In this document: positions 3,700 to 63,872 of the stretch, one piece after another
How the letters are laid out: every line of letters starts with the position of its first letter
Position numbering within the stretch: the first letter of the stretch is position 1
From: Lepidodermella squamata
Taxonomy: Eukaryota; Animalia; Gastrotricha
NCBI GenBank assembly: GCA_047495785.1
Contig: JBLDXI010000015.1
Location: forward strand, 310,001 to 374,000
Length of the DNA: 64,000 nucleotides
Reading direction: 5' to 3'
The notes under the pieces: generated by a model
The model's input: only the letters and a program-made list of their open reading frames with translations
The model's database searches: none
Told to the model about the DNA's origin: nothing
Translations under genes and position numbers: made by a program

Positions 3700-5227
3700 A
3701 TGACATCTTTTAATTCAATCGCAATATGCAAGGTTTGTGGGTGCCTTGTGCCACCTCGCCCCTGTTATCAACCTCGAACCTGTGCGGCTTGTCAGAAATT
3801 TTTCCGCCGCAACTGTGAGAAATGGCAGCGGTTGAGGTGCAACCACGACTTTGATGCAACGGCTTTGGCAAAAGCGAAAAGTCCTCGAGATTGGTGCAAA
3901 TTTGATTGTTCGAAATGCCGATTCGAAGCATGCGTTCGCGCTGGTCTAAAAAGTAAATTATGCATTTCAGATCGATTTACATTTTGGATCCTCAGGCGAG
4001 ATACTCCGAATCTGGGAGCTAGATTAGCATTTGCGAATTTCGGCTGTTCGCCAAGGTTGTAGAAGCTCGCCGTTCTTCCTGGGGCTCAAATTCTTTCTAT
4101 TTAAATGTTACTAGACTTAAAACAACAAAAAGGATGAGAAATTGAACACTAAACATCAAAATGAGATGATTAGGAAATTACTGTTATATCAGTTAATGCT
4201 TCAAAGGTAAATATCTGACGAATGCGGAATTCAAAGTCAAACAAAATCTGGCGGTTGATATGCGCCCATCGCCAAAATATGGTTTTATAGTTGAGCATAC
4301 GCTGGAAAAAGCCATTGACCTTCAACTGCTTCTTCACGGCCTCGAGCAGGTATTTTAAAGCTCATCTTCACTAATGAATGCGTTCTACAGATCATCATTT
4401 CAACAGCTGCCGACGAGGAGCACCTTTGTAGATGCTCACATGTGCGATTTTGAGTTCATTAGAAAGCTTATTTTCGTCAACATGGCAGCATTCCTTCACC
4501 TCGGCCGAAAGTTTGGCTGCCTAATGCTGGGTATGGCATTCGATTTTTTGTAACACTGTTGCTTTTCAAAATTTGCAGTTATTAGAAAATTTCAACTTGA
4601 GCGAATCTGATGTGCAATCGCTGCTAGTTCGAAACTGGAAAAGCGTCACAGTAGCCTACTCGTCTCTACCGAGCACTAGCGGCGGGCTTTTAGCCAATTC
4701 CAGTGTTTTACCCAGTCTTCTGGACAATTTTCCAGAAGTTATGGTAAAATTGACACTTTTCCCACTATTCGCATCAAATATATCTCTTTTACAGCCGGCC
4801 AGAGCTGCTGAGAGCCAAGTTTCGGAAGCCATGAGCGAATTGAACCCAAGCCTCATCGAAATAGCTCTGATCTCGTGCCGCCTGTTTCTGCGAGGTATAA
4901 TACTGCCTTAAACCTTGAATAATCATTTCTATACTCGTTAGTTACGTTGTATTTGAAGGTGCTAGCAATTGTGATGAGTCACTTGCCGTGAAAGCAGCGC
5001 GAAAATGTGTTGACACGGCTTTTGCTTTGATCTGCCACAGGCTGCACGGCCAACGAATGGCGCAAGTGATGAAGAAGGTTTTGGAAGCTGAAAACCTCAT
5101 CGGCTTGACTTCGCGAGTTATTGACGATTGCAGCGTCGCAGTTATGAAGAAACTCGAGGCTTCAGTTAGCCACGACGAAAGGGCACTCGGCATCAAGTTC
5201 ACGCTCGGTGTGATTGACAAGATGTGA
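3700..5227 (+). CDS. Divergent nuclear receptor, paralog 1 (six exons)
   Basis: Exon 1 encodes CKVC..CAACQKFFRR..CNH..CSKCRFEACVRAGLK. Approximate exons 3700-3952, 4207-4349, 4407-4531, 4586-4743, 4795-4894, 4959-5227 with GT-AG introns. LBD signature-like FxLSESDVQSLLVRNW. Confidence 0.88.
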
Positions 5228-5646
5228 AAGACATTACGCATTACTTGTTTTATAATAATAAATGTTTCATTTTCATTTTACAGCAGAAGTTCTCTAACAA
5301 GTTATTATTGCAGAGTGGATTTTTATTATCCCATAAATGCCGAGTAATTATTAATAGATTATGAAGCATTGTCTTTTACCCAGTCATATAAAAGTAGTCC
5401 TAAAGTTGACACTGGGAGAGACCTTTTGGGTCCGACTCAGATGGTATGGTAAAATTTGGATCTACGCACGATCTTCTGAGCTCTATGTATACTTATTTCC
5501 GTGTGGTTTTTTTCGTAGTAACGGCAGCTAATGAGCAGTTCTTTATTAATTCATTTCAAAGGCCGCTCAATGAACGGCTGGTTTCACGGTCCAGGCGATG
5601 AGCTGTACATATTTTAGCATGAATTTTCCAGTCTGCCTTTTCCAGT

Positions 5647-7353
5647 CTACATCAAATCGAGCATTTGCTTGTTGCTAATAGCAATTTCATTCGAGCTGGA
5701 CGAGGCCGCGAGTCGTTTCATAAGCACGGCGCAGCAATCGTAAGCAACTCGACACGTCAGGCTGATGAGAGATTCAAGATTGGTTACGTATCGCATGACT
5801 TTCGGGGCGTTCGAGCCGTGCAATTTGTAGCACATCAATTCGAAAGCTATTCCAACACGCTTTCGCGCTGCTTTAATGCCAGATGACTCGCAATCGCCAG
5901 TACCTATTCACATAAAAATTAAGCCATTTAACTATATCTCTATAGCTAGGTAAATCACAAACGGCGGAGAAACAGGCGGCAAGACAGTAGAGCTATTTCG
6001 ATGAGACTGGGATTCCATTGGCTCATGGCTTCTGCCAATTTCTTTTCAGCATTTTTTGCCGGCTAAAAGAAAATAAACGATAAGCTATTGTCGAAATCGG
6101 ACCTCAAGATTCAAGTGAATCACCTGAGCTTCTGGAAAAGTGGCAAGGAATAATGGCAGGACACTAGGATTAGTCATAAGTCTGCCGGTGTTGTTGGGCA
6201 GAGATGAGTAGGCTACCCCAACGCTCCACCAATTGCTGGCTCTAAGGCTCTGCAATTCACATTCGGACAAGCAAAAATAAGCTGGAAATACACATATGAA
6301 GACATATTTTTCAAGTTCTGAGACCATACCTTGCATTTGATCGCTAAACGTTTGAGCCACCCGAAAAAAGCCAGCCATTGTGCTAGAGAACAGCTTCGAG
6401 ATTTCCTGGGAGTTGCAAGATAACTCCTCAAGAGAAGTGGTCTTCAGTGGTAACTATAAGAGGTAACTGTTTCATTTGTCTCAATAAAACTACAATTAGC
6501 TGTGAAAATACGTTTTCTAGGTCGAGAAGCAACAGTTGAATATCGATAGCTCTTTTCAACGTATCTTCCACTACGAAACCAGTCGATGACGATGGGCATA
6601 CATCAATCGCCAGCTTGGATGCATTTCTGATATCGGGGCGTGTCAGAAATTTACCTTGATTAACAATTAAAATTAATAACAATTTTAGACGGGAGACGGA
6701 TCAATTGAAAATCTAATTTTAACTAGACACAGCTAGATAAAATGTTTTTGTAAGCTTCCAAGTATCTGAAATTTAGAGGAATAAATAATTAGGAATAAGG
6801 AATAATTATTGATCATCTACGAATGAGTCTTTTGTCAAATAGAGAAAGCTTCTCTTGATCGCAATAAAAATACAACATATTTCCAACCTATCGAGATTTC
6901 ACCCGCGTTCATTGCGAATGATTTTCCAACTCAGAGTAGCCGCGTGGCACCAACAGCGGACAAAATGTTCATTTTTTCGCCCGTTCGGATGATACCCCCA
7001 TCACTCTGAAAGTCTCACCTTGCTCTCGGAACACTGATGCTCCTTATAAATGAATGTTGTATAAACTCACTTCTCATGCCAGCTCGGATGCATCTTTCGA
7101 ACCGGCATTTCTTGCACATGCTACGCCGCATATTCGAGTTAGGCGGCGGCTCGCCAGCACTCGCGTAAGTGTGGTTGCATTCCAGTGATTGCCACCGTTC
7201 GACGCTGCGTCTGAAAAACTTTTCGCAAGCAGCACAGGCTCGCGGTTGGTAAGCGGGACGTTTCGTCGCTACGAGACCGCATACTTTGCAAAGGCGCTGA
7301 GGCGGTTGGTTAATTTGAGAAACCAACTTGATGTTGTCCTCAAAAGCTGTCAT
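5647..7353 (-). CDS. Divergent nuclear receptor, paralog 2 (six exons)
   Basis: DBD exon CKVC..CAACEKFFRR..CNH..CKKCRFERCIRAGM at 7353-7071. LBD exons match ORFs 6428-6682, 6085-6378 and 5647-5838. Exon 3 opens in frame from acceptor cttatag (LPLKTTSLEE...). Confidence 0.85.
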
Positions 7354-9894: not shown

Positions 9895-11177
9895 ATGACT
9901 GAAGTTGCACCGGCACTTCCGAAATGCAGGGTATGTGGCCTGGCCGTGTCTAGAAGGGGGCGTTTTCAGCCCCGCGTTTGCCACGCTTGCCAGAAGTTCT
10001 TCCGACGGAACGCAGATCATTACCTGCAGTTGCAGTGCAACCACAAGAAAGGGAAATCTGGCGAGTCGCAAAACAGCGCAATTCATCGGCGAGGCATGTG
10101 CACGAAATGCCGTTTCGACCGGTGCGTCAAGGCTGGGATGAAATGTGAGTATTTCTGAAAAGGTAATTATAACCGAAAAAAATGCGTCCCTCTCCCCATG
10201 CAAATATCCAGGTAAATATCTAGAACAGATGCTAGGAGCTGAAAGGGAAAATATCGAGCGAAGTCCTCAGTTGACGGATGGCCTTGATCTCGAAGAAGCT
10301 CTCAGGCTAGCTCTCGACACACAATTGCAGCTTCACGACCTTGAACAGGTTTTTAACGATTCATTATCGACAACTCTGACGACTTTGTTTTCGCAGCTTC
10401 CGCTAAGGAAAGCTCCCGAATCATCGGATTTGAGCGATGGCAGAGTCATGGCCGCACTTATGTTTTCTAATGTCATTGCGTTGATGCGACTGAACATCTC
10501 GTTCTCAAAGTTCATGTCGGGTAAAATTCTATGATTTCGGATCTACCTCCAATCTTTTTGATCTCATTACAGAGGCGTTTAGATTAAATGAGAGCGAAGT
10601 ACGAGTACTGATGGCTCGCAATTGGAAAGACATCACGGTTTCGTTTTCTGCTCTGCCGGGGGCTTCGGGTCGCTTTCTCGTGCATCAAGACGTTCTCCCA
10701 GCATTTCTTGATGTGAACCCTGAATTCCTAGTGAGTTTGCGCTTGATTTCATCCATTGCAATTCGTATTCCTTGTATAGCCAGCGAAAGATGCGGAAACG
10801 AAACTTTCTGTGACATTGAGCAACTGGGATCCTACTCTCGTTGAAGTTGCTCTCTTTACCTGTCGGCTGTTTTTCAGAGGTTAGCTATTGATGTTTATTT
10901 TTTCATTTTTCCGAATTCTATTAAAGGTGATGGGGAATCTTCGGCGTTTCTCAGAGCTCAGAAAAGAATTGAAACAGCGTTCATGATGATCTGCTCGAAG
11001 CTTCATGATTCCGAAATGGCACGGACTTTGCATGAAATAGCCATCGCTGAAAACTTGATAGCCATGACTTCGAGCGTTATCGACGAGTGCGGAGCTGCTG
11101 TTCTCCGGCGGCGAGAAAGGACGATGTCCGGCGGGGAGGTCAAGATAACAAAGTGCATCTTCAACGTCAAAAAATGA
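9895..11177 (+). CDS. Divergent nuclear receptor, paralog 3 (six exons)
   Basis: DBD CRVC..CHACQKFFRR..CNH..CTKCRFDRCVKAGMK with donor gtgagt at ~10145. LBD exons lie in ORFs 10145-10534, 10611-10844 and 10983-11177. Confidence 0.88.
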
Positions 11178-14400: not shown

Positions 14401-14499
14401 TCTATAATGTAGTAGATCAAAGATATTTATCAAAGAAAATCACATTTATATTCGCTTTTGCCAAGCCTTCGCGCCTCAAACTCTCGCGGCGCCTCTTGC

Positions 14500-16988: not shown

Positions 16989-18806
16989 TTATTCACCTTC
17001 GAGCGTGAGCCTGATGCCTAGAGCTAAGTCTGCAGAGCCGGACGTCGATGTGAGTCGCTTCAAAATCGCAGCGCCGCTATTCGCCAGAGCTCGCGATGCC
17101 ACGTCGACGAGTTGTTCAACAGTGGAAACATCCCGCATGACCTTTTCCACTCCAGCGCCGTGCAGCTTGTAGCAAATCATGGCGAATGCAATGTCGACAC
17201 GCCTACGCGCTGTTTGTATACCATCCGAATCCCCACAATTGCCTGTATAGGTTCGAATAACGGTAAAAAGTCATAAACAAACTTATGCGACAACTATTAC
17301 TGCGGAGGAACAGTCGGCACGTGAGAAGAGCAAGTTCGATGAAGCTTGGATTCCATGCGCTCATGGCGTCTGATAATTTGTTTTCCGCAGCCGTGGCCGG
17401 CTGAAAAAGGGAGAGGGCCCAGTCATTAGGTGGAAGAGTTTAACGTAGTCGTTCCTACGGGCTACTAAAATTTAAACCACGACTTGACCTCTCAACCTTG
17501 GGCTACTATGTATTAGCATGAGACTTACAGTAGGTCTCATGACTATTAGTGGATGGGCTACTATCGGAAAAATTACGGTAACAATATTTTGAAATCATTG
17601 TAATGAGAAAAGTAAAATCTCGACTGAAGGAAAAAATTGCGCCGTATTTTAGCTTTGATAAAGTTGATGTATAATAATTGTTATCGTTACCAAAACCTCT
17701 GGGAAGTTGTGTACGAAACTGGGTAGAAGACTGGAATTAGCTGTGAGGCAGCCACTGACGCTCGGCAGAGAGGAGTAAGCCAGAACAACACTCTTCCAAC
17801 GAACTTCCAGGCGCTTCACGTCAGATTCGTTCATTTTGAAACACTCTGGTAAATTCATGTTTAAAAATTATTCTTCACTGGTTTTAAAACATACCCTGAA
17901 TTTTGTCGCAAAACATTCGGCTGAGTCGTAGATAATCAACAATATGATCGCAAAAGAGCTTTTTAATGACCTCAGAGTTGCAATAGTTGTCATCTACATA
18001 GGTTTTCCTCATCGGCATCTAAAACATAAAACTGGCAATTCAAAACGCATAACTAGATTGTTCAAACTACGTGATCGAGACCGTGGAGCAGCAGTTGAAC
18101 ATCGACAGCTTTTTCCAGCGTATCTTCTACAATCGTACCAGCCAAAGACGTTGGGCCCGAGTGAATGGCTACGCCTTTTCTCGTATGCTGCATCATGAAT
18201 TTACCTGGAGCATGAACAATTATGAAGGTGGTTAGTGGCTAGAAGTCAAATGTTTTTTATTTCCACTTTGACCTTGCGAACCGGGGCTGCGATACCTACT
18301 CTAACGCGTCGCTTCATCCGATGTACCCAGACTTTCAAACAAGGAAGGGGTAAGGGTAAGTATTTCGACAAATACTTATACATATAAAGATAGATGCACG
18401 ATAGCATTTGAAAAATTCAAAAAAGCCACCGTAGACTGGACTTGAACGGGACCATCGCTACTAGTTTGAACAGCTACAGTACTAGTTTTGAGATTCTGAT
18501 AGCAATGCATGTTGGGAACTTACTTCTCATGCCGGCTCGGATGCATCGTTCGAATCGGCACTTCTTGCACATGCTACGCCGCATGTCCCTCGTGGTTATA
18601 GGCTCGTCAGCACTTACGTGTTTGTGGTTGCATTCCAGTGTTTGCCACTGTTCGACACAACGCCTGAAGAACTTTTCACACGCGGCACAAGCTCGCGGCT
18701 GGTAGTTGGGGCGTTTCGTCGCTACAAGACCGCAAACTTTGCACAAGCGCCGAGGAGGTTCGATTACCTCAGAGAAAAAAGAAGTATCAGCTTCAAACGT
18801 TGTCAT
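16989..18806 (-). CDS. Divergent nuclear receptor, paralog 4 (six exons)
   Basis: DBD CKVC..CAACEKFFRR..CNH..CKKCRFERCIRAGM. Exons ~18806-18524, 18205-18073, 18017-17895, 17847-17691, 17400-17300 and 17243-16989 are all open in frame. Closest to paralog 2. Confidence 0.87.
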
Positions 18807-23112: not shown

Positions 23113-24740
23113 TCACGAACAAGGAATTCCCAAAGTGAATTCGACGGCTAAGGCGAGTTCCGCGCGGCTAGATTCTGCTCCCCGCCGTTTTATAACAGCC
23201 GTGGCGCACTCGTCAACAACTCGCGCCGTAATCCCGATAAGATTTTCGACAATGGAACTTTGCATCCTCACACGACCGGAATTGGATCCATGTAGTTTCC
23301 AACAGGTCATTTCAAATGCCTTATCGACACAATCCCGTGCAGCTCGTAAATTCGCAGATGTTTCGACTTCATCTGGATCTAGGAATGTTTTTGAATCGGA
23401 AATCCAAATGAGTCACGTAATCATTTAATTTACTTTGCAAAAACAGTCGACATGGGAAGAGAGCTGCTTCGATGAGCGACGGGTTCCATTCTCCCATGGA
23501 ATCAGCAACTTTACTGCAAGAGGCATTAGCTGGCTATATAAATTGTAAACATTATGACGGACAACAAAATGAAATAACTTACTAAAAGTTCGGGGTTGCT
23601 TTCAAGAAAAAACGGAAGAATATCGTAATTCGCCAGTAAGCATCCGCCGGTGCCTGGAACAGCCGAGTAAGCGACCGTGATAAGTTTCCAGTTGCGAGCA
23701 AGCAGGGTATTAACTTCAGTCTGGCTCAAGTTGAAAGATTCTTGTGAAATGATTTGTATAGTTTTCATTATTGATTATGCCTAAACCTTCAAACCTTGAA
23801 TGTAATTCGAAAAATTCAAGCCGAGACGCCGTGGTTGCACTTCATTGGCAGCTAAAGAAAAATTGTAGTATTCGGGCTATTTCGTTATTTTGAGTCTCAC
23901 ATGTTCGAAGCCATGAAGCTGTAGCTGCACATCAATTGATTTTCTCACAGTTCCCTCAACTAGCGAATACTCCATAGCTGACGGGAATTTTTCTATTTCC
24001 ACTTCAGAGCCAACAAAAAATCTACCTATTATAGAAACCAGGCTTCAAAAAATACAGTGGGTTGCCATAATGTTTCGTACACCCCACAAAAACCGTGTTT
24101 TTCATCCCCAATGAAATCTCTTCAGCCTATATCAATGGGGCCCATAAATTATTACTAACAATTTTGTTCGGAGCAGTTTGAGCTCAAGAACTCGACAATC
24201 GGAGCAAAGGATAGGTCAGGGCATTATCGATTCGTCAACCGATTGATGCTGATTTCACATATATTGATTGATGGAATATTAGCGAATATTAGGATGATCC
24301 TAAATTTCCAGAGCAGCAAAGCTCGTGTCTTCTAATTAAATAGGCATTGCTGATTACTAATCCGAAAGCAGAACTCGAATACGAATTTCGACTGCAAAGT
24401 CGTATTCGAGTTCTGCTCTATCCGAACTGTTGCTCCACGTTCATAACTTACTTCGCATGCCTGCCTGCAGGCATCTATCAAAACGGCATTTCGTGCACAT
24501 AGACCGCCGCTTAGCCCGATCGTCCTGCAGTTCTGCAGCAGCCCTTGGTTCGTATTTATGATTGCATTCAAGTGACCGCCAAATCTCAGCATTTCGTCTG
24601 AAGAACTTGTGACAGGCCGAGCAAACTCGGGGTTGATGCGACTGCCGCCTCGGCACCGGAACGTCGCATGCTTTGCAGTTGAGGTAATTTTTCGTCGCTT
24701 TAGTGGCATTTGAAGATCCTGGTAAAATCCCCGTCGACAT
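23113..24740 (-). pseudogene. Nuclear receptor paralog 5, probably frameshifted in exon 3
   Basis: DBD (CSACHK..CNH) and exons 2, 4, 5 and 6 look intact. Exon 3 (~23851-23795) is 57 nt versus ~124 nt in paralogs and reads LPMKCNHGVSA-stop. Confidence 0.7.
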
Positions 24741-26214: not shown

Positions 26215-28564
26215 TCAAATAGCAATAATGCCAAGTGTGAATTTGACGCCGAGGGACAGCTCAGCTCGTCCGCTGGATTTGGCCCGACTCCTCAGCATTG
26301 ACGATGAACATTCGTCGAGCACGTGAGTGCTTATGCCGATGAGGTTCTCGACCACGTGAGCCTGGTGAATGACCTGTTGCGATTTCGAGCCATGAAGCTT
26401 GTGGCATATTGCAACGAAAGCTTTCTCAACGGATTCTCGTGCTGCGAGTAATTCAGGTGAATCATCCATTGCATTGGCGCCTTGAAACGAAAGATACAAA
26501 ATCTGAGGTATTTCGAACACAAAATTGACTGACTTCGTGCAATTTTTTAGTTACTCCCGACAATTCTTATGATGAATCCTTCAAAGAATCAGGATCATTG
26601 AAAAAAAACTGGATGAATCCTTCAAAGAATCAGGATTCAACCAGTTTTTTTTCAAGGACAGCTTTGGTGCGTAAATTATGTAAACTTGGGTACTATTTGT
26701 GGGTAGTGCTTGGAAATCTGTGATAGGAAATCTGGAAATAGGAAATCTTCGAAATTCTGGTGTGTGAATTTGTCCGCATTAGTACAGACCAAAGCTTACT
26801 TACACATCTTCAGTGTGAGACTTTCAGGGGAAAGAGGGGCTAATCCAAGAAAATCCACAGAAAATCCAAGCCCTGTATAGCTCTACTTCGTTTAGCGAAT
26901 TTTTCATTTGGGTTATTGCGGCGTGATATTTTTTTCCAATTGCTTGAGCATTCGTAGCATGAATTTACCTCGGAAAAGCAGCCGACAAGTGAACAGCGCG
27001 GCCTCGACGAGCTTTGGGTTCCATTTGCTCATTGCAGCCGCCAAGTTTTCTGCCGCAGCGCTTACTGGCTAGAAATAATTCTTGATACTGCCCATAGAAT
27101 GATATCTTAATCGAATGAACTTACGCGAAGGTCGGGGTAGTGATCGAGAAACATAGGTAAAATATCAGGATTCGCTAGCATGATGCAGTTATTTCCGGGC
27201 AGGACCGAGTAAGCCGCACAAATGTTCTTCCAGCCGCGAGCTAGAAGAGTTCGAACTGTAGATTCTTTCAAATGAAAGCAATCTGCGAACAAAACAGAGC
27301 ATAAATATGATGCATTACAATAAGTGATAAGAAACTGAAAACAAAACTGTTGACGGTGGGTAGGCTGAACATGTATCTTCCTAAGATGCTATCATGCAGC
27401 TTGTGAATTACGGGTTTACGAGAGGTCTAGCCAAAGAAAAAAATAAAAAAAGTTACCATTTTATTCTCATAAACCCGAGACTGAAAATACACAAACGTAA
27501 CCCCCTCGCCCTTCTTCCCAAAACCCCTTCGACCTTCGGCATCGCGGATCCCACTTCTTCCACTTGTAAGATATAGAACTACTCAGAATGCTTTGATTAT
27601 AATTATATTAGATGCTTTGAAATTGAAATCTACATCGTTTGCTGAGGTGAAATCTACTCCATCTACGGTTAGGTACATGTTTTAGTCCAGTTGGAACTTA
27701 CCTTGAATGCGGCTGGCAAAAACCCAACCCAGCTGCAAAATTCCCGAGATATTGCCGATCAGAAGCTGCGCAGTGAAGTCACTATTGCTCATTTGCTTCT
27801 TGCTGTACTGAAATCTCATCGGCAGCTAAAGAACATGGGTTTGAATAAATCATAGCTCATATCAAGCGCAGAACTAACATGTTCTAGACCGTGCAGCTGT
27901 AACTGCATCTCGATTGCTTTCCGCAGCGTGCCTTCTATTAGCGGAGAATCAGTTGTTGCAACTTCCAGGTTGATGTTCGCCGTTTCGGCATTGCGCTTTG
28001 TCGCCATAAATTTACCTGTAAAAATTGCTATTTTCAATACTTATTTGATAAAGCATTGACGCTAACGCATTCAATCTGCCGTAAAAATTGTTTTAAAAAA
28101 TGAGAATTAATCTGATCGGTTATTAGCAACGCAAATAAATCGAATGGCCAGGAATGTTTAAAAAAATGCATTTTTAGAACTTGGAAGTGAGCGCAACGTC
28201 GAAATTATTCCAGCAACAGTTCATTATAGCCCAAGCCAGCATTGCGATGATGTGAAGAATTGAACTTACTCCTCATTCCGGAGTTGATGCATCTCTCGAA
28301 GCGGCACTTCGTGCACATGCTGCGCCGCATGGCCGAGTTGGTCTGCAAGCCGCTGGCGTTGTCGTGCCGGTGGAGGCATCGTAGCGACTGCCAGTGCTCG
28401 GCGTTTCGCCTGAAAAACTTGTGACACGCGGAGCAAACTCGCGGCTGGTAATCGCGGCGCTTTGCCACTGGAAGGCCGCAGACGTTGCATCGGTGAGGCT
28501 TCTTTTCTTCAGCAGATTTTGATGCTACCATTTTGTCCCTATATTTCTGACTATTCTCCGGCAT
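26215..28564 (-). CDS. Divergent nuclear receptor, paralog 6 (six exons)
   Basis: DBD CNVC..CSACHKFFRR..CLH..CTKCRFERCINSGM. LBD exons ~28016-27880, 27824-27702, 27282-27125, 27068-26969 and 26481-26215. Confidence 0.87.
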
Positions 28565-29677: not shown

Positions 29678-32600
29678 CTAACACATGGGTGCTTGAAATG
29701 AAGGAAAATGGGATGCGATCAGTGAGTAAATTTCCATTTCCTTGTCCCTTGTCCGGTCATGCCGGCCGATGGCGGAGGATTCTGGCATTATATCTATAAT
29801 TCTCACACCGCGTCTCGTTCTCCTTTTATTTTCCCGTTTAGCTTTGACAAACAGCAGTGATTCCGAGAATAAAGCGCCAAGGGTTATTTCTTCACTGGTG
29901 CAATTTTCTGCTTGCCGCCTCACAATCGCAGCCCCGCACTCATCGTTGATACGAGTAGCGATGCCGATCAGATGCTCTACGATCGACACTTGCTGCAACA
30001 CGCGCGGCGATTCACAACCTCGCATCTTCCAACGTATTGCAGTAAAGGCCCTTTCGATATTTGATTGAGTTGATAGCAAACCGGGAGATGATGAATTGAA
30101 TTCATTACACCCTATTGGTTAACAGCGTGTGAGATCTCGATCGATTATAGAGCACTAGCCAATGAATGCCTACCTTGGAAAAACAAACGACACGTGAACA
30201 ACGCCGTTTCGATGAACGATGGATTCCATTGGCTCATAGCGTTAGATACATGGATTTCTGATGCGTTTGCGGGCTGAAAAACGCAAAATTAAGAAATGAG
30301 AACTCTGCCTATGTTCGAACAGGAAGGGTTTGATAACTCACGTAATATCAAAATTTGAACATGAAAGCGTACCAGAAGCTCTGGGCTATGCTCCAGTAAA
30401 CTCGGCAAAATGCTGGCATTAGCTAGCAAGCTGCCGCCTGTGCCCGGCAGCGCCGAGTAGGCGACAGTAATGCCCTTCCAGTTACGAGATATTAGATGCT
30501 GGACCTCCATTTCGCACAAGTTGAAGGATTCTGATAAAGAATAAAGAGAGTGGATTTTTATCGTTCAGTTTCTCTATTTGGCAGCTCACTCACCCTTGAC
30601 GTGAATCGCAAACAAGCCACCGATATTCATGATGCCCACAACGTTGCCAATCATAAGTTTCTTAAGAAATTCATCAATTCGATAATCGCTTAACCTATCG
30701 GTGCATTTCATCGGCAGCTATAGCATATGTATATTAGCTCATCAAGCCACCTGCAACCAATTATCAAGACATACGTGTTCTAGACCGTGAAGTTGCAGCT
30801 GCGCGTCGATCGCTTGCTTCAATGTCGTCTCGATCGCTGAAGTGTTGCGATCGCTTGGAAACTGGCCGATCGGAATTATCGTTGAATCAGGGTTTTCATC
30901 TGCTAGAAATTTGCCTGAAAATGGAAAAATTTAGGTTTGTAGCTCTTGTACTCTCATGAATGTCCCTAAAATTCTTCCTCACTTATATCACTGAAAACAT
31001 TAAATTTGAAAAGTTTCAAAGGCTCAGCATTCAGATCTAAATTCAGTATTCCCAGTTTTACCTCGCGACATTTTCTGTCAGCATCAGGAAGATGGTTTTC
31101 TTCTCCTTTTCTTTCATCGTTAAATTGGCTGATGGGCTATTATTAAGCCTTAAGCTCCAAGCTCGATACTCGAAAAAATGCTTGCGCAGTGAGCCTTCTA
31201 ATTTACATATGCATAGTCGAAAAAATAACAAATCGCATCAAATTGAGTATAACAATTATTTTAATCCGCCTAGTCACTGGAGCCCAAATTTCAAGTTTTA
31301 AGTTTCAAGTCAACAGCGGTGAAAGCATTTGACTAGGGTGCCGAGGTCACAAGACTCTCCTCAGCCTAGCGGCATTTGTTTGTTCTGTCAACAGGTGGTA
31401 TCAGCTTTGTGCTCCGTTCGCTCTTGACGCTCTTGAGGACTCAAGCCTTAATCCTGTGTTGTGGGTACAGTTAAAATTATTTATGCTTTATAAGACGCGA
31501 AACTAGAGAAATCACAGCAATAAATAAGACATTTAGTTTCAGTTAGCTTTTAAAATAATTGATTGCTGGTTGCTGGCTTTTGCAGTATAAATGTTCAAAA
31601 TAGAAGAAATAGCGAAAAATCAACAATGAAGTCATGCGTAATTGAAATTATCGGTCTATGGCCTTCGGTCTTGAACGAAATACCTACTTGTGATTTTGGT
31701 CTTGGTTTTGGTCTCAGTTTCAAGCAGAAAGTATGGCCTTGGGCTAGGCATAGGACCGAAAAGTCTGCCCCGTAGCTAACAGCGAAAAGCAATACTCCTC
31801 AAAAGGGCGATCAAGAATTTATCAAATTCAATTTTCTGCAAATTTTCAAAGTTAAAATTCCGAAATCGTCCGTCCCGCCCGCTAGCGTTTAGGCATAACC
31901 CTCCATTTGACGGTAACTCCATCTCGCCGTTGTTCTGAAGTTGCGGTAAATATTTACTGTAAACGGCACTACACTGCGACACTAAAGACTAAAGCATGCC
32001 AATACTGCATGCGGTAAAATTAATTTCTCAAGAGTAAGTTCAGCTCATATTATGGAGGAACAGAAACGGGGTTGGAATTGCGCGCCGCTACAAATGATTA
32101 TCTGATGGGGCACACGCGCAGCCGCTCGCGTACTTGTAATATTGCGTGTTACGCAACCGCTGTAGTCAGGGTGCGATCTTCGATCCCGGAGCTGCCGGGG
32201 ATGGACATTTTTTGTTGCTGTATTTGCCAAAATGACAAGTCATTTATACTAAAAACCGAGCGAAGCGAGAACATTTTGAAAATTTCTCACTAAAACATGC
32301 TCCACAACCTCTCAAAATTAACAAAACAGTGGGATAAATTCTCATTTTGTTGTCTGGCCCGGCCGAGCTGGGAGGGATGATCCCCCCCATCCCCCCTGAA
32401 AGTCGCACACAGGCTGTAGTGCATGTCTTCCAATGCAAGTTGAGAATTTGACGCGTTACCATGATTTGCGAGGAGACTCTCATCTTTGGTGTTCTAATTC
32501 AAAACTGAAGAACAAAAATGATGGTAACAGACCAACTTCAAAATGAATGATTAGTTTTGATTCGGAATTTCTGATTCGATACAGATACAAAGCTGAGAGT

Positions 32601-36572: not shown

Positions 36573-36828
36573 TACCGTAGTACTGCCCGAAGTGTTGGGC
36601 TTGACCTTCAATTTTTTCAAAACAAGTCGAAACTCCAAATCATATTTGAGTCCGCCCGTTATTTGAGGCCTGACCCTTATTATTTCGAATCATTCTCAAC
36701 TCACCACGTGCCACTATACAACGCTTTCCAAATAGATTGCCATATGCTCGGTTTTTCAACCCGAGGAAAGTTTTAGGAGGATTTGGGAAATCTTCAAAAT
36801 GTTCTCGTTTCGCTAAATGCTGATTTAA

Positions 36829-36980
36829 TTAAAGCAGAGACTGCCAGTGCTCAGCGTGGCGTCTGAAGAACTTGTGACACGCCGAGCAAACTCGCGGCTG
36901 GCAATTTCGCTGCTTTGCCACTGGAAGTCCACAGACGTTGCATCTGTGAGGCTTCACTTTATCCCCAGATTTCGACATTC
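36829..36980 (-). pseudogene. Truncated NR DBD (first zinc finger only)
   Basis: KPHRCNVCGLPVAKQRNCQPRVCSACHKFFRRHAEHWQSLL-stop; similarity ends just before finger 2 and no LBD exons follow. Confidence 0.8.
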
Positions 36981-37681: not shown

Positions 37682-40296
37682 TCAGGCTATAATGCCAAGT
37701 GTGAATTTGACGCCGAGGGACAGCTCAGCTCGTCCGCAAAATTTAGCCCGACGCCTCAGAATCGAAGATGTACATTCGTCGAGCACGTGAGTGGTTATGC
37801 CGATGAGGTTCTCGACCACGTGAGCCTGGTGAATGACCTGTTGCGATTTCGAGCCATGAAGCTTGTGGCATATTGCAACGAAAGCTTTCTCAACGGATTC
37901 TCGTGCTGCGAGTAATTCAGGTGAATCATCCATTGCATTGGCGCCTTGAAACGAAACATACAAAAGCTTAGTTATATCGATCGAATACAGGCTGGGACAG
38001 TTTTGAAATTCATGCCCCAGGAGATTAAAACTTGACAAGCGCCAAGCTGCTTGATTTTACTTTATCTAATGACAAATTCTCCGATTCGGGTTTCAACAAA
38101 GCCACTTGCCTCAGTCCTATCAGGGTTTCTTCTAGTTTCTGGCACTGAGCGTTGCCCAGTGACGAAAATTCCAGAACCTATAGCTCTCTACTGTGCTTTA
38201 TTGATTTAATCAAACAACACAAACAGCCTGAGAATTCGTAGCATGAATTTACCTTGGAAAAGCAGCCGGCAAGTGAACAGAGCGGCCTCGACGAGATTCG
38301 GGTTCCATTTGCTCATAGCAGCCGCCAAGTTTTCTCCAGCAGCCCTTACTGGCTAGAAGTAATTCTTGATAATGCCCATCGAATTATATCAATAATAAAC
38401 TCACGCGAAGGTCGGGGTAGTGATCAAGAAACATAGGTAAAATATCAGGATTCGTTAGCATGATGCAGTTATTTCCGGGCAAGACTGAGTAAGCCGCACA
38501 AATATTCTTCCAGCCGCGAGACAGAAGATTTCGAACCGTGGATTCTTTTAAATGAAAGCAATCTGCACAGAACAGAAGTGTAATACTATACAATAAGAGA
38601 TAAGGAACTGAAAACAAAGCCGTTGATGGCTGGAAGGCTGAAAATTTATCTACTTATGATGCTATGATTCAGCTTGCGAATTACGGGGATACGAGAGGTC
38701 TAGACGAAAGAAAAATAAAAAAAAAATAAAAAATTTCGTCTCATAAACTCGGGAGCGAAAACAAAAACCTCATCCACCCCATCACATCGTGCATTCCACC
38801 TCTGCGATAAAAACCTAAAGTAAGGGAAGTCCCATTAAGGCTGTCAATCATTCCAAAAGAGCATGACCGGATTACAAGAGAGGGGCCGAATCACGTGAAT
38901 TTCTCAGGTGGCACCCCACTGCCTGTTAGAGGTTTGAAACTCGCATATATCGCGCAGTTTGACAGTTTAATCTACTTACTACATCGGGGATTTCTAGTAC
39001 TTTGCTTAAAAGCGGTTCTATACAATAGTTCGAGGTTAATTTCAATATAGAGCAGAAGTAAGGGAACGGCCCCGCCATAAGGCAAGTGTTGCGTTTTGAT
39101 TGATAAAATTGCAACGCAGCCATTTAAGCCAACATATAAGAGAACATGCCTTGAATCAGAACCTCCCATCACATCATGTAATCTGAGTGGAATCCACTTC
39201 ATTTACGGTTACCGGTTATATGTTTTGTCCATATAGGGTAATTTTTACTTACCTTGAACGCGGCTGGCAAAAACTGAACCCAGCTGCAAAACTCCTGAAA
39301 TATTGCCCATCAGAAGCTGCGCATTGAAGTCTCTGTCCCTCATTTGCTCCTTGCAGTATTGAAATCTCATCGGCAGCTAAAGAACATGGGTTTGAATAAA
39401 TCATATCGAATATTAGGCACAGTACTAACATGCTCCAGACTGTGAAGCTGTAACTGCATCTCGATTGCTTTCCGCAGAGTACCTTCCACTAGCGGGGAAT
39501 CAATTGTTGCAACTTCCAAGTTGATATTTAACACTACAGCATTGTGTTTCATCGCCATAAATTTACCTGCGGAAAAATGTAGGTTTTTCAAATCAAACTC
39601 ATGTAGTTTTTAAAGTATGGCCTACAAAGCCAAAACAAAAGCCTACAAAAGCAAATGTCGATTTGCTAATAATGTGTTCACAAACAGGGCGCGAAGTACG
39701 GGGGGAATGAGAAATATCGTTCCCCGCCCCCTCATCGATATCTGCAGGCCTAAGTTGAAAACCCCGGAGGAGCTCTTTGGCCATAAAATTGGGTACCGAA
39801 AATACCCCCTAGTCAGGGATGAGATATAACCATGCATGCCTCGAAGTGCACCTGTTGTCGAAATTATTCCTCCAACGCTTCTTCTTAGACCGGCTTTGCG
39901 ATGCGATGCGCGCAGGCCCGCCTAACTTAAGCGCGTGAAGGAAACCTAGGCGGGCCTGAAAATGAGCGAGCGATGCTTGAGAAAAGTAAAAGTGGAAGAA
40001 TTGAACCTACTCCTCATTCCGGTGTTGATGCATCTCTCGAAGCGGCATTTCGTGCACATGCTGCGCCGCATGGCCGAGTTGGTTTGCAAGCCGCTGGCGT
40101 TGTCGTGCCGGTGGAGGCATCGCAGCGACTGCCAGTGCTCGGCGTTTCGCCTGAAAAACTTGTGACACGCCGAGCAAACTCGCGGCTGGTAATCGCGTCG
40201 CTTTGCCACTGGAAGGCCGCAGACGTTGCATCGGTGAGGCTTCTGTTCTACTGCAGATTTTGCGACCGCCATCTGATATTCTGAATCCTTGTGCAT
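37682..40296 (-). CDS. Divergent nuclear receptor, paralog 9 (six exons)
   Basis: DBD nearly identical to paralog 6. LBD exons ~39566-39430, 39375-39253, 38562-38405, 38351-38252 and 37945-37682. Confidence 0.87.
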
Positions 40297-43717: not shown

Positions 43718-43734
43718 TTTATGCTAAAGTTTCG

Positions 43735-45454: not shown

Positions 45455-47416
45455 TCAAATAGTTGTGATGCCAAGTGTGAATCTCGCGCTGAGCGGCATT
45501 TCAGCTCGACCGCTGAATTTGGCCCGACGCATCAAAATTGACGAAGCACATTCGTTGAGCACGTGCGTGGTTATGCCGATAAGATTCTCAACCACGTGAG
45601 CCTGATGAATGACCTGCTGCAATTGCGACCCATGCAGCTTGTGGCTTATTGCTACGAAAGCTTTCTCAACGGATTCCTGCGCCGTTAGCAAATCGGGTGA
45701 ATCATTAATTGCATTGGCGCCTTGAAATAAAATATTATACAAAAGCTTAGTTATATCGAACGTAAATTGACTGGCATTGTCAAATAGTATAAATCTTTCC
45801 TCTGAAAATGTTACTTCCGTCTATTCTCTATGTTCTCTATTCTACTATGTTGAATTGAAACAGACACGAAAATCTTGAGAATTCGTAGCATGAATTTACC
45901 TTGGAAAAGCAGCCGGCAAGTGAAAAGTGCGGCCTCGACGAGATTTGGGTTCCACTTGCTCATAGCAGCCGCCAAGTTTTCTCCCGCAGCGGTTACTGGC
46001 TAGAAACAATTTTATTATATAACCTGTCAAATGATGTCTATAAGAACTCACACGAAATTCAGTATCCTGATCGAGAAACGTTGGTAGGATTTCAGGATTT
46101 ATTTGCATGAAGCAGTTGTTTCCGGGCAGGATTGAGTATGCCAAACAAATGCTCTTCCAGCCGCGAGCCAGAAGAGTTCGAACTGTAGATTCTTTTAAAT
46201 GAAAGCAATCTGTGAAAAGAGCAGAACAGAAGTATAGTATGTACAATGCAAGTTGCGAATAGTTTGCCAAACGCCGTATACTCTAATAAGAGTAGGTTTT
46301 TTTCAGCCAGTACGTAATAAGGATGAGCTATAGAACAATCGAGACGGATGATCTTAGAATTCAAAGACCTAGAAGAAAATATAGTAATATAGGGGTTGAA
46401 CCTCGGCATTCGGCATCACATGTACGGTATACGTTAAAATCCACGGCGCTTAAAACGTTAAGCTGAACCGCTGAACACCCATCACAACATTTGATCTCAG
46501 GTGAAATCTACTTCCTTTACGGTTATATGTATGTTTAGCCTTGCGGCTCTGGTTTGCTTACCTTGAATGTGTCTGGCAAAAACCCAACCTAGCCGCAACA
46601 TTCCAGAAATATTGCCAATCAGAAGCTGCGCAGTGAAGTCACCGTCGCGAATTTGCTCCCTGCAGTATTGAAATCTCATCGGCAGCTAAAGAACATGGGT
46701 TCGAATAAATCATATCGAATATCAAGCACAGTACTAACATGATCCAGACCGTGTAGTTGTAACTGCATCTCGATTGCTTTCCTCAGCGTACCTTCTAATA
46801 GCGTACCTTCAATTGTTGCAACTTCCAAGTCGATATTCAGCTCTGCAGCATTCCGTTTCTTAGCCATAAATTTACCTGAAAATAACCGTAATTTTCAAAT
46901 ATATTTGATGAGGTATTGATTCCAGAGCATTCAATTAGCAAAGAAATGCGTTATTAGCAAGCCAAATAAACAAAAATTCAGGTTAAATAACGGGGAACTA
47001 GAAAATAAATTGTGGATTATTCTAGCAACGCTTCTTCCGGAGCCAGCTTTGCGATGCTTGAGGAAAGTAAAAGTGGAAGAATATAACTCACTCCTCATTC
47101 CGGAGTTGATGCATCTCTCGAAGCGGCATTTCGTGCACATGCTGCGCCGCATGGCCGAGTTGGTTTGCAAGCCGCTGGCGTTGTCGTGCCGGTGGAGGCA
47201 TCGCAGCGACTGCCAGTGCTCGGCGTTTCGCCTGAAAAACTTGTGACACGCGGAGCAAACTCGCGGCTGGTAATCGCGTCGCTTTGCCACTGGAAGGCCG
47301 CAGACATTGCATCGGTGAGGCTTCCCATCTACAGCAGATTTTGCGATCGCCGGGTTGTCTTTAAAATCCTTACTATCCTCTGTCATTTCTTGAGTTCTGA
47401 TAGGTACAAATTTCAT
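45455..47416 (-). CDS. Divergent nuclear receptor, paralog 10 (six exons)
   Basis: DBD nearly identical to paralogs 6 and 9. LBD exons lie in ORFs 46676-46867, 46497-46679, 45896-46270 and 45455-45742. Confidence 0.87.
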
Positions 47417-52352: not shown

Positions 52353-54345
52353 TCATAGATAAGGGATGCCTAAGGTGAATTCAACGGCTAGGGCGAGTTC
52401 CTCGCGGCTGGACGCTGCTGCTCGCCGCCTCAAAACAGCTGCGGCGCACTCGTCAACAACTTGCGCCGTTATTCCGATGAGGTTCTCGACTACACAACGT
52501 TGCGCCATCACTTGACTAGATTTAGGGCCGTGAAGCTTCCGACAAGTCATTTCGAATGCCTTATCGACACTCTCCCGTGCAGCTCGTAAATTTGCGCTGG
52601 ATGGTTCCTCGGCATTCAGGTCTAAGAATGACCAGCATTAGTTATTGTAAAATATTTCATGGAATTATGGCACTAGAATTTACCTTGAAAAAACAGTCGA
52701 CACGTGAAAAGAGCTGTTTCGATCAGCGATGGGCTCCACTCCGCCATGGAATCAGCAACTTTTTTGCATGGAAACGCAAACACATCATTACTTATCTCGG
52801 TCAGGAAATCGTACACCCCACCAAGAGTTCGGGATTGCTTTGTAGAAACAACGGAAGAACATCGGCACTCGCCAGCAAGCATCCACTAGTGCCTGGCAAA
52901 GCTGAGTAAGCGACCGTGATAAGCTTCCAGTTACGCGTTAACAGGCTATTAACTTCCGACTGGCTCAATTTGAAAGATTCTGATAGCATAGCTGAGAGTG
53001 AAACTTCAATTTCTCAATATTAGAACTGCTTAAACCTTCAATATAAGCTGCGAACAACAAGCCGAGGCGCATGATGCCAGTAACGTTTCCGGTCATAAGG
53101 CTTCGCAAGAACATTTCGTCCCTCAGGGCACTGGGGTTGTGATGGCACATCATTGGCAGCTGAAATGAAAGGTTTAGTACTTCGGCCTTTCGGAATATTA
53201 GAAATCTCACGTGTTCAAAGCCATGAAGCTGTAGTTGTGCGTCAATCGCTTTTCTCAGAGTTCCCTCGACATGTGAGTACTCGAATGTTGGTGGGCATTG
53301 GTCAATTTGCAACGTTGCTCCAGACCAGAATTTACCTGTTAGCAATCAAGCTGGACTAAGATGAGTTCGATATTCACTGAGTAAAGCTGAGTAAGCGACC
53401 GTGACAAGTTTCCAGTTACGAGCAGCTAAAAGTTGAGCTTCATATCGGCTCAACTGGAAGGATTCTAAACAATCGTCCAAGAATTTTCACTTCACATCTT
53501 TCAGTAAATCAGTCCAACCTTGAACTTTTACCGCAAAATCCGAGCTGAGGCGCACTAGGCCGGCAACGTTACCCGCCATCAGTTTTCGCAGAAAATTGAA
53601 GTCCATCATGTCCTTGTTGTAGTAGTATTTCATGGGCAGCTGAAATTAAATAGGCTAATTAATTGCTGACCTAAATTCCTGATACTCACGTGTTCCAGTC
53701 CGTGGAGCTGAAGTTGCGCATCGATCGCCTTGTTGAAGGTCACCTCCGCAAGGGAGAGATCGACCAGTGTTGGGAAGTGGTCTATCATCCCGTAACTCGT
53801 CAAAAACTTACCTAAATGTGATTAAAATAAATCGTTAATAGGGTGCTGAAACAAGTTGGAAAGCCGGGACTCATTCGTCAGAGGAGCGCTGCAGTAGTAA
53901 TCCGGGAAAGTTCGGGAAAAGTATTGGAATTTGGGGAAAATGAAAGTTGTTCTCTGGGAATTTTAAAAAATAATTAAAAATGGAAAAATTGCATGGGCAG
54001 AAGAGTGAATAAGAATTGAGGTCGCGTGCCCAATTTTAAAGAAGATCGTTATTTTTCGATCTATATAGAGTATTGATTTGTCTATGCATCGAACTTACTC
54101 TTAATGCCAGCACGAAGGCATCTGTCGAATCGGCATTTCGTGCACATGGTGCGCCTGAGAGTTCGGTTGCTATTAGCTTGATCAGCAGTTGCGCTATTGT
54201 GGTTGCATTGCAGTGATTGCCAATTCGCGGCATTTCGCCTGAAAAACTTGTGACACGCCGAGCAGATTCGAGGTTGATAAGAGAGGCGTTTCGGCACCGG
54301 AATGCCACAAGCTTTGCAGTTGTAGCTATTACTCATCGCTTTCAT
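52353..54345 (-). pseudogene. Nuclear receptor locus 11/12: one DBD exon with two sets of LBD exons (probable deletion chimera)
   Basis: DBD at 54345-54099; exons 2a (~53811-53690), 3a (~53640-53518) and a truncated 4a (~53465-53385); then 2b, 3b, 4b, 5b and 6b (53335-52353). No clear acceptor for 5b. Confidence 0.7.
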
Positions 54346-57666: not shown

Positions 57667-59178
57667 ATGATGGACGATCATGTGTCCCAAACGTTTTTAC
57701 AAGAGGCTATCAAATGCAGGGTATGTGGCCTCGCAGTTTTAAAGCGGCACCGTTACCAGCCTCGAGTCTGCCACGCTTGTCAGAAGTTTTTTCGGCGAAA
57801 TGCAGAAAATTGGCGATCCTTGAAATGCCGGCATAAATACGAGAATTCTGGTGAGCTTCAAACAAGCCGTGCTCATCGCCGATCTATGTGTACCAAATGC
57901 CGATTTCAGCGATGCCTAGATGCTGGAATGAAATGTTAGTCTTACCTATAGTGGCTTCGATTATATCGCTAGAAAGCCGTAGTCAAAGAGCCATTTTATT
58001 TGCATAACTCTCCATTTATAATTTTATCATTTTAGGCAAGTTCCTCGCTAATGAACTTTTCGAGATAGTCGAGATAATCGATCATAGTCTTCAAACAATA
58101 GACAGCTCAAACCTAGAAATGACATTGAAGCTAGCTATTGATACACAACTTCAGCTTCATGATCTTAAACACGTGAGTTATGCTGAAGAAATTTCTATAG
58201 ATTAAATAAGTAAGTTCTTTTTATTTTTTCAGGTGCCCTTGCGAACAAACACGGCTTTGGAGGTACTACGCGATCCAAGCACTTTAAGTGACCTAATGTA
58301 CGGCAACATCATTGCATTGATGCGGAAAAGGCAGATTTTTTCGACCTTCTTGCAACGTGAGCTTTGTTTTATTCGAATTTCAGAGAGAATTTTCACTAAG
58401 CATGCTCATTATTAGATACTTATTAATTGCGTTTCAGAGTCTTTCCAGTCTCTTTCATTCAAGTTTCAGATTTTAGAGATAATGTTCACTTTAATTATTC
58501 CCAAACGATGATGCCCAATGTTATGTTTACATTTAAATTGTGTATGCTCCAGAGTCTTTCCAGTTGAATAAGTCTGAAGTTGGAGATTTGCTGTCGCGAA
58601 ACTGGAAATTGATAACAATCGCATTCTCAGCTATGCCCGGGACATCAGGGCGGTTTTTCGTGCACCCTGATTGTCTGCAACTGTTTCTCGATATGAATCC
58701 TGAATTTGTGGTACTAGTAGATTTCTTGAAAATTTATTTCCAAACTTGTTGCAATTGATTTCAGCCGGCTGTACAATCGGAGGAGGAGACCTCTGAAGCA
58801 CTTGCAACATGGAGCCCCCCCCACGCTTCTCGAGGCAGCTCTATTCACTTGCAAGTTACTCTTTCGCGGTATGTAAATTCGCTGGAATGACATAACAAGT
58901 TGACTGGGGGAATTGTTTTAGGCTGCAATGATGCCAAAAAATCTTCGAAAGCAACAGAAGCTCAAAAATGCATTGACACTGCTTTCTCGGTGATGTGCTC
59001 AAAGCTTCATGGTCCTAACTCGGCTGAAGTCATGCGGCTAACGTCTGCTATCGAACAGTTGTGTTCCGTGACGGCATCTGTCATTGATGAATGCGGCGCA
59101 GCGGTTGTTCAGCGACGGGCTGTTACGGCAAGCAGAGAAGAACGAGAGCTAGCTAAATTGACATTCAACGTCAAATAA
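57667..59178 (+). CDS. Divergent nuclear receptor, paralog 13 (apparent 1-nt frameshift in a C8 run in exon 5)
   Basis: DBD CRVC..CHACQK..CRH..CTKC. Exons ~57667-57934, 58036-58173, 58233-58356, 58553-58710, 58764-58868 and ~58922-59178. The C8 run at 58815-58822 breaks the frame relative to paralog 14. Confidence 0.75.
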
Positions 59179-61957: not shown

Positions 61958-62213
61958 TACTTTGTGAAGGTCACTATATGGATCGATTGCTGTGATCAAG
62001 AGCTATCGATTGATATCAGATTGAATTCCGCGCGGAACTTCTGGAATTATGGTTTTTTGCCTCCTAAGCTAGCAAAACTTGAAAAACTTCGCGCTTTTGG
62101 CCAAAAAGTTACCCTGACTGTTTCGCGTGGTCCTCGATCGGACTGCAATCGATAGCTCTTTATTACAGCAATTGATTACGGCAGTTGTAGATCCACAGTA
62201 ACCCTTCAAGTAT
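61958..62213. mobile_element. Palindromic MITE
   Basis: Imperfect terminal IR (gaaggtcactatatggatc / gatccacagtaacccttc) and inner IR (aagagctatcgattg / caatcgatagctctt). Confidence 0.6.
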
Positions 62214-62399
62214 CGCCCATTAAAGCAAATAAAAAATATCGCTTATCCGGTGTAGAAAGCTGAAACCTAGAATCGCAGAATCGCCCGATTTAAGGAATTA
62301 GTACTTAAATTAAAAAATACCTCATACAAATGCTCCCTATTTAACATACTCGAATTTAGACCGTTAGAATCATCGTTAATCATCGTTCATTTATATTTA

Positions 62400-63872
62400 A
62401 TGATGGACGGCTTGGATGATGAAGTGTACCAAACCTCTCCACCAGATGCTACCAAGTGCAAGGTATGTGGTCTCTCGGTTAGGAAGCGGCACCGTTACCA
62501 GCCTCGAATCTGCCACGCTTGCCATAAGTTTTTCCGGCGAAATGCGGAAAATTGGCGATCATTGAAATGCCGGCATAAATACGAGAATTCTGGTGAGCTT
62601 CAAACAAACCGCGCTTTACGCCGATCTATGTGCACCAAATGCCGATTTCAGCGATGCCTAGATGCCGGAATGAAAAGTGAGTCCTAATACGTAATGGGTG
62701 TGATTTTATTGATGGAAGACCGTAGTTGATGAACTAATATAGCCCTTAATTTAATTAATTTCTCTCCGCTCCCGAAACATTTGATTTCCCAACAATTATT
62801 AGACAATATTATTCATTTTAGGCAAATTCCTCGCTGATGAATCCTTGGACATTTCCGCACAGATCGATAACAGTCCTCAAACAAAGGACGGCTCAAACTT
62901 CGAAACGACGTTGAAACTAGCTATTGATACACAACTTCAGCTTCATGATCTTGAACACGTGAGTAATACTAGAGAAACCTCTGGGTTCTAGGTTATGTAA
63001 GTCCTTTCTCGTTCAGCTGCCGTTGCGGACGAACTCGGCTTTGGAGGCTGTTCTTCGCGATCGAACTAATTTGACCGATTTAATGTTCGACAACCTGCGT
63101 GCATTGATGCGGAAAGCACTGATGTTTTCAACCTTCATGCAACGTAAGCTCTCTTTCATTCAAGTTTCAGATTTTAGAGATAATGTTCACTTTAATTATT
63201 CCCAAACGATGATGCCCAATGTTATGTTTACATTTTAATTGTGTATGCTCCAGAGTCTTTCCAGTTAGATAAGTCTGAAGCCGCGGAATTGGTGTCTCGA
63301 AACTGGAAATTGATAACAATCGCATTCTCAGCTATGCCTGGGATATCAGGACGGTTTTTCGTGCACCCTGATTGCCTGCCACTGTTTCTCGATATGAATC
63401 CTGAATTTGTGGTAGAAGGCTTTTTAGAAATTCCTATCCAAACCTATTGCAATTCATTTCAGCCGGCTGCCCAAGCCGAGGAAGAGACCTCGAAAGCTTT
63501 TGCATCATGGAGCCCTACACTAATCGAGGCGGCTCTATTCACTTGTAAGCTATTCTTTCGCGGTTTGTGAATTCGCTTCAATAATATTCCATTTTAACCG
63601 AGAAAATCATTTTAGATTACAACGATGCTACAAAATCTTCGAAAGTAACAGAAGCTCAACAATATATTGACACTGCTTTCTCGGTGATGTGCTCAAAGCT
63701 GCATGGTCCTAACTCGGTTGAAGTCATGAAGCTAACGGCTGCTATCGAACAGTTGTGTTCTGTGACGGCATCTGTCACTGACCAATCCGGCGCGGCTGTT
63801 TGTAAGCGGCGAGGTGCTACAGCAACTAGAGAACAGCGAGAGCTCGCTAAATTGACATTCAACATTAAATAG
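62400..63872 (+). CDS. Divergent nuclear receptor, paralog 14 (six exons)
   Basis: DBD CKVC..CHACHKFFRR..CRH..CTKCRFQRCLDAGMK. Exons ~62400-62676, 62822-62958, 63017-63143, 63254-63411, 63463-63562 and 63617-63872 are open. Sister of paralog 13. Confidence 0.88.

Follow-up and report, generated by a model that had tools for sequence, protein, structure and literature searches.

The array of receptor genes described here raises the question of how a nuclear receptor (NR) can dispense with one of the cysteines of its second zinc finger, and what might stand in for it. The window, by which we mean the whole 64,000-nucleotide stretch of Lepidodermella squamata DNA that was analysed (G000:C15:310001-374000, in a 121-Mb assembly), contains 13 such genes, g1 to g13, in each of which finger 2 in the DNA-binding domain (DBD) opens with C-X-H and lacks the sixth canonical cysteine, Cys6. 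We regard all 13 as functional genes from a large, lineage-specific nuclear-receptor branch, in which one DBD is combined with a very divergent domain of ligand-binding type. On balance, we favour the reading that finger 2 is a Cys3His zinc site, in which the histidine would join Cys5, Cys7 and Cys8.

A six-frame pattern scan recovered 13 uninterrupted receptor-type DBDs between positions 3727 and 62642, four on the plus strand and nine on the minus strand. The preliminary description had placed a tandem array at 3700-63872, and these end points coincide with the ATG of g1 and the stop codon of g13. Canonical NR fingers are spaced C-X2-C-X13-C-X2-C and C-X5-C-X9-C-X2-C (PMC10497141). Instead of eight cysteines so spaced, the window DBDs have seven cysteines plus a histidine: finger 1 reads C-X2-C-X14-C-X2-C and finger 2 C-X-H-X18-20-C-X2-C in 13/13, and both scan and alignment agree with the initial account of the two fingers. 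The finger-2 triplet is CNH in six genes, CLH in three, CRH in three and CYH in one; g8 has 19 residues between the His and Cys7, g1 and g5 have 20, and the other ten genes have 18. Alignment of the 13 DBDs (A1) shows C9, C12, C27, C30, C46, H48, C67, C70 and C75 to be invariant, together with K32, F33, F34, R35 and R36. CAC encodes the His in ten genes and CAT in the other three, indicating that the residue has been kept through synonymous change. Against solved DBDs, Cys5 of the array aligns with Cys5, and the canonical Cys6 column, about ten residues ahead of Cys7, holds E, L, Q or P. Cys6 is thus truly absent, as had been claimed. The segment from Cys5 to Cys7 runs to 20-22 residues against 15 in the canonical domain, and the five-residue D-box, whose loss had also been proposed, is gone as such. 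For the different dimerisation or monomeric binding that this loss was said to imply, the sequences gave evidence in neither direction.

The domain can still be recognised as a receptor DBD. Pfam zf-C4 (PF00105) matches 8/8 tested DBDs, six of them at 25-37 bits and two at 17.8 and 19.4 bits (cut-off 21.1 bits), and a profile of the 13 DBDs retrieves 87 solved receptor DBD sequences at E <= 0.01, the best being NR5A2 (6e-8). Structure prediction returned the receptor DBD fold. The g6 DBD, folded by AlphaFold2 with an alignment of 60 family DBDs, gave a mean predicted local distance difference test score (pLDDT) of 81.5, with a recognition helix at residues 28-43 and a second helix at 68-77; the 50 Foldseek matches listed for this model are all solved receptor DBDs (probability 1.00, template modelling (TM) score about 0.6). 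Residues 41-50 of the model, which include C46 and H48, have a mean pLDDT of 83, and scores below 50 are confined to residues 51-57, where the variable loop begins. The loop past the His is predicted to be disordered. The proteins have most likely retained DNA binding, since neither the recognition helix nor helix 3 has been lost. The canonical P-box reads C-E/G-x-C-K-x (as in CEGCK-) and is followed by FF(R/K)R. In the array KFFRR is invariant, but E, Q, H or R stands in place of the usual Lys, an invariant Lys follows at the next position, and the first P-box residue varies among paralogues, being A, H or S in the window and E elsewhere in the genome family. This replacement and this variability make diversified target sequences likely, and suggest that DNA target specificity has been both altered and diversified.

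Gene models were built by a splice-aware search of the window with the g8 protein (351 aa) as template. Six exons were obtained for 13/13 genes, at about 330-460 codons each, the models of g5, g11 and g12 being approximate in one or two exons. The DBD is a single exon in every gene; it begins a few codons past the ATG, and its last base is the first one beyond the GM(R/K) codon, where the splice donor is a GT, in most cases GTAAGT or GTGAGT. Introns are of the GT/GC..AG type and mostly 47-65 nt long. Splicing of g8 could be followed in RNA-like contigs, whose run was labelled as RNA by guesswork: introns 1, 2 and 3 are cleanly supported, and four of the five introns are supported in all. The contigs define introns 34467-34520 and 34642-34699 (joints 34466/34521 and 34641/34700), and the final bases of the DBD exon are found on a loose contig end at 34836, joining that exon to exon 2. 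Intron 4 (34212-34308, minus strand) is a GC..AG intron whose contig support includes one mismatch, and the intron-5 joint was found in a chimeric contig.

The genes of the window belong to a much larger family. The DBD profile has at least 150 matches in the genome (150 of 379 candidates scored), and further DBD copies flank the window on contig C15 at 282-310 kb and 377-388 kb. A near-duplicate array is present on C105, where E-values equal those of the C15 copies match for match. Receptor arrays at C25:2.25-2.33 Mb and C26:0.54-0.62 Mb likewise recur with equal E-values. The recurring arrays probably represent an uncollapsed second haplotype, and family counts would be inflated as a result. 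We sampled 45 DBDs from 40 genome stretches and added the 13 from the window, giving 58; three were set aside (one duplicate and two with an H-start finger 1), leaving 55 distinct members. All 58 sampled DBDs share a 14-residue finger 1 and the motif C-x-A-C-x-K-F-F-x-R, mostly CEACQKFFRR.

Finger 2 takes three forms across the family. The first has C-X-H, no Cys6 and a loop that ranges from 10 to 26 residues; the second retains a Cys 9-10 residues before Cys7, with the D-box stretched to 6-15 residues; the third has neither His nor Cys and is represented by one copy, L026. In 40/41 members that have no Cys in the usual range, 8-11 residues ahead of Cys7, a His stands at position +2 from Cys5, as against 1/14 genome members having a Cys at the usual place and 0/10 public relatives with the CEACQK box. 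When a tree of the family DBDs was built without the variable loop, the 13 window genes fell within a supported clade of 19 (99/95), all of them C-X-H, and other C-X-H clusters formed separate supported clades in a comb without resolved order. A single origin of C-X-H is compatible with the data (approximately unbiased (AU) test, p = 0.21). Sister subfamilies (L005-L009; G000:C25:2314501-2333500 and C3:466001-548000) keep Cys6 and have D-boxes of 9-15 residues (C-X9..15-C-X10-C). C-E-H and Cys6 occur together in a single copy, L007:7236.

To look for relatives outside this genome, 1.84 billion representative proteins were searched exhaustively by profile. The search gave 805 matches at E <= 0.001, of which 22 reach 1e-10; none fell below 1e-30, a range in which genome paralogues score down to 1e-40, and the family itself is therefore not in the representative-protein library. 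A lineage-specific expansion, as had been proposed, is supported. A word-index protein search with the g6 DBD exon returned no candidate, and a scan of JGI metagenome contigs with the DBD profile matched 111 patterns, among which no relative was confirmed.

The nearest public proteins are ENA metagenome products (P0009-P0013, P0015, P0020, P0023, P0024 and P0033). Together with P0164, they resemble the array in their 14-residue finger 1, their CEACQKFFRR motif and a homologous C-terminal domain, but differ from it in having a Cys at or near the Cys6 place (C-X5/6-C-X7-9-C); none has a His at +2. The metagenome proteins and the genome family form one clade (99/93 in the family tree; Shimodaira-Hasegawa-like approximate likelihood ratio test (SH-aLRT) 82 in the wide tree). 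One metagenome scaffold, L041 (ENA ERZ23486787 scaffold_2286), is 22.8 kb long, of about 40% GC and from an intron-poor eukaryote; it carries two adjacent CEACQKFFRR receptor genes, and its source is probably a relative, as yet unsampled, of the animal whose DNA is studied here. Its receptor genes adjoin a gene for a 1,355-aa doublecortin-domain protein. A further public protein, P0001 (UniParc UPI00074D98E5, 876 aa), has five zf-C4 domains in a row and could be a tandem array fused into one gene model. Two of its DBDs have C-(N/C)-H and no Cys6, one of these at canonical spacing, with C-N-H and a Leu at the Cys6 column. P0001 is an unrelated receptor and an independent case of the same swap.

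The preliminary description had called His-containing NR fingers rare. A published precedent exists, in a different layout: HR96b (Vitellogenic factor 1) of parasitic flatworms has a CHC2 second zinc finger that has been called unique among animal receptors (PMC8363021), and this was the only published His-bearing receptor finger found in our literature search. As in the array, one finger-2 Cys of a receptor DBD is replaced by His, and that His is kept across orthologues, its effect on DNA binding being unknown (PMC8363021). In HR96b, however, the His is reported to stand at the canonical cysteine place, in a single-copy orthologue group with an HR96 P-box (PMC8363021). The array has neither this position nor this P-box: its His is at +2 from Cys5, its Cys6 column is E, L, Q or P, its loop is 5-7 residues longer than the canonical one, and it combines a 14-residue finger 1 with a CxACxK P-box in a family of at least 150 DBD matches. 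Full-text searches turned up no receptor paper with a CEACQK-type box, and literature searches on rotifer nuclear-receptor zinc fingers no description of the family. The Cys-X-His layout would seem an undescribed variation, of moderate extent, on a protein family that is very well known.

Comparison with other systems helps to define the branch. The first DBD of 2DBD-NR (NR7) has the P-box CEACKK (PMC10497141). Such first DBDs share with the family the C-E-A-C-x-K-F-F box and, in 2DBD-type matches, the 14-residue finger 1; this finger, correctly reported in all 13 genes, is thus common to the genome family and 2DBD-type first DBDs and not peculiar to the array. In contrast to 2DBD receptors, whose fingers keep C-X5-C-X9-C, each window gene model contains one DBD instead of two, and CEACQK takes the place of CEACKK. 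A wide DBD tree, of 58 columns only, did not join 2DBD first DBDs to the genome family. Nematode supplementary receptors comprise hundreds of fast-evolving tandem genes with odd P-boxes and barely recognisable ligand-binding domains. The array resembles them in these respects, as a lineage-specific expansion; no specific sequence relationship was found, nematode proteins appearing as weak matches only. For the chemistry of finger 2, the RING finger offers an analogy. In RING structures, a C-X(1-3)-H pair shares one zinc with the final Cys-X2-Cys pair. This ligand set would equal the one we propose for finger 2, in an unrelated fold with an unrelated function. In the RING-finger consensus, Cys-X(1-3)-His supplies two neighbouring metal ligands, numbers 3 and 4 (PMC6969932).

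The window proteins and P0033 have homologous C-terminal domains (E 4e-16). Comparison of a P0033-group profile with solved structures found no relative among them, an iterative search found no canonical ligand-binding domain among the proteins fetched, and alignment to one nematode receptor with hhalign covered the DBD only. By language-model features, P0033 residues 165-435 resemble ligand-binding-domain clusters (score 0.93, 172-175 shared features), and 85/100 of the matches found in this way carry PF00104. Furthermore, the 50 Foldseek matches listed for the low-confidence model of the P0033 C-terminal part are all receptor ligand-binding domains, with E-values of 0.005-0.02 and low TM scores. 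With moderate confidence, these model-based comparisons point to a very divergent ligand-binding domain.

An odd finger in a tandem array could reflect plain degeneration among decaying or non-functional duplicates, and the array does contain dead pieces, namely a DBD fragment interrupted by a stop codon and orphan exon-4 pieces, while the Pfam scores are weak. All 13 genes nonetheless have open six-exon frames, g8 is spliced, and seven Cys and one His are invariant over 13 old copies. Median pairwise ratios of non-synonymous to synonymous substitution (dN/dS; Nei-Gojobori, 13 genes) were 0.135 for the DBD core, 0.30 for the C-terminal domain and 0.55 for the finger-2 loop, at a median dS above 1. 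By these rates, with dS so high and dN/dS low, the 13 genes are old duplicates kept under purifying selection and not decaying copies, and we regard decay as very improbable indeed. The contrast between loop and core (0.55 against 0.14) also fits the original claim that the loop varies freely behind an invariant His. Readings of the array as pseudogenes or as zinc fingers of a non-receptor kind were dropped on the basis of dN/dS, intact frames and fold matches.

Cys5, Cys7 and Cys8 are invariant, which suggests that the metal site is still needed. The His is most likely its fourth ligand: no other invariant residue between Cys5 and Cys7 could serve as one, synonymous codon change has left the His intact, and it occurs where Cys6 has been lost; the confident model around C46-H48, the swap in P0001 and the RING C-X(1-3)-H precedent lend further weight. 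Several observations count against this view or against the wider account of the genes. The association between His and loss of Cys6 rests on four pairs on supported branches, and a sign test is not significant. L026 (C-X27-C-X2-C; G000:C28:1166615-1166833, minus strand) lacks both the His and any loop Cys, and six members, g1 included, have the His plus an extra loop Cys. RNA support comes from g8 only, in a run whose label was guessed; Pfam detected no Hormone_recep domain in P0033 or in the two window exons tested; and the AlphaFold2 model of the P0033 C-terminal part, made with three homologues, was poor (pLDDT 39.8). The sister copy of L026 has C-K-H, and L026 itself could be a dead copy or a three-ligand site; unless it is dead, a three-ligand or zinc-free finger has been tolerated at least once.

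L026 speaks for the chief rival reading, a finger in which the His binds no zinc, where three cysteines would act with water or a loop carboxylate, or finger 2 would be zinc-free. The His would then be conserved for contact with the DNA backbone or for a protein interface at the former D-box. The canonical D-box is an interface region. Position +2 after Cys5 falls within the D-box as defined in PMC10497141, and the loop past the His is the part predicted to be disordered, both of which would suit a non-ligand role. We nevertheless think such a role unlikely: against it count a His found almost solely where Cys6 is missing, the absence of any other invariant candidate between Cys5 and Cys7, the same swap arising independently in P0001, and the invariance of the three remaining cysteines. 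It is also conceivable that in some members, for example the clade of g1, the extra loop Cys has become the fourth ligand instead of the His. The motif W-C-K-F-D-C-S-K-C of g1 and the C-(I/T)-H-N-C of L010 and L013 would allow this, and in L010_878 a Cys lies ten residues before Cys7, near the canonical place. These cysteines are not conserved even inside their small clades, while the His is, and we consider the exchange quite improbable. The Cys3His site remains, with a modest preference, the reading we adopt.

The features of the array are collected in Table 1. In addition to the dead DBD fragment, two orphan exon-4 pieces were found. The open reading frames (ORFs) at 12665-14191 and 14793-15785 lie within 11752-16244.

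Table 1. Receptor genes and other features of the window (positions count from its first base; finger 2 is given by its opening triplet, with the distance to Cys7 where noted).
Feature	Position	Strand	Model	Finger 2	P-box	Remarks
g1	3700..5227	+	six exons, 348 aa	CNH-X20-C	CAACQK	additional Cys three residues ahead of Cys7
g2	5647..7353	-	six exons, 354 aa	CNH	CAACEK	Pfam zf-C4 36.8 bits
g3	9895..11177	+	six exons, 339 aa	CNH	CHACQK	
ORF	12665-14191	-	508 aa			between g3 and g4; no Pfam match at E <= 0.01
ORF	14793-15785	-	330 aa			between g3 and g4; no Pfam match at E <= 0.01
g4	16989..18806	-	six exons, 347 aa	CNH	CAACEK	
g5	23113..24740	-	approximate	CNH-X20		modelled exons 2 and 3 shorter than those of paralogues
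g6	26215..28564	-	six exons, 359 aa	CLH	CSACHK	
g7	29678..33054	-		CNH	CSACRK	last exon 30111-29678; start ATG uncertain; intron 1 of 1.7 kb
High-copy repeat	31670-32445					inside first intron of g7; DNA-run depth 50-300x that of flanks
g8	33789..35766	-	six exons, 351 aa	CYH-X19		
Dead DBD fragment	36817..36966	-				finger 1 plus P-box; TAA stop in the Cys5 column
g9	37682..40296	-	six exons, 355 aa	CLH		
ORF	41344-42276	+	310 aa			between g9 and g10; no Pfam match
g10	45455..47416	-	six exons, 369 aa	CLH		
g11	52353..54345	-	exon 4 approximate	CNH		extra exon-4-like piece 53382-53462
ORF	55772-56491	-	240 aa			between g11 and g12; ankyrin repeats (Ank_2, E 8.6e-10)
g12	57667..59178	+	336 aa; exon 5 approximate	CRH	CHACQK	
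g13	62400..63872	+	six exons, 350 aa	CRH	CHACHK	

We are now able to propose how the DBD of these receptors may have been remodelled. The first half of finger 2 would have been rebuilt around the loss of the canonical Cys6, with the D-box segment turning into a longer, fast-evolving and probably disordered loop, and with the His two residues after Cys5 serving as the fourth zinc ligand of a Cys3His site. The recognition helix and helix 3 would have been kept, most likely for DNA binding as receptor-type transcription factors. A more ambitious proposal, which we offer tentatively, is that the array represents a new receptor subfamily of well over a hundred genes in a single invertebrate lineage that has been poorly sampled, with a Cys3His finger formed on a C-X-H knuckle, D-box dimerisation given up in favour of a variable loop, and a P-box without the canonical lysine. 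If true, this would amount to a new mode of DNA recognition and assembly for the receptor fold, with tandem duplication as the source of its diversity.

The practical consequence is small; the interest of the family lies in the domain itself. The receptor DBD, among the most conserved DNA-binding modules of animals, is usually taken to have a fixed set of eight cysteines and a fixed five-residue D-box. A family that is under purifying selection and keeps the fold, with a zinc ligand moved to a His and the D-box turned into a free loop, would show how far this module can be rebuilt. Variation of the P-box among the paralogues offers a ready series for the study of how receptor DNA specificity diversifies, and the family as a whole is natural material for asking what the D-box and Cys6 serve.

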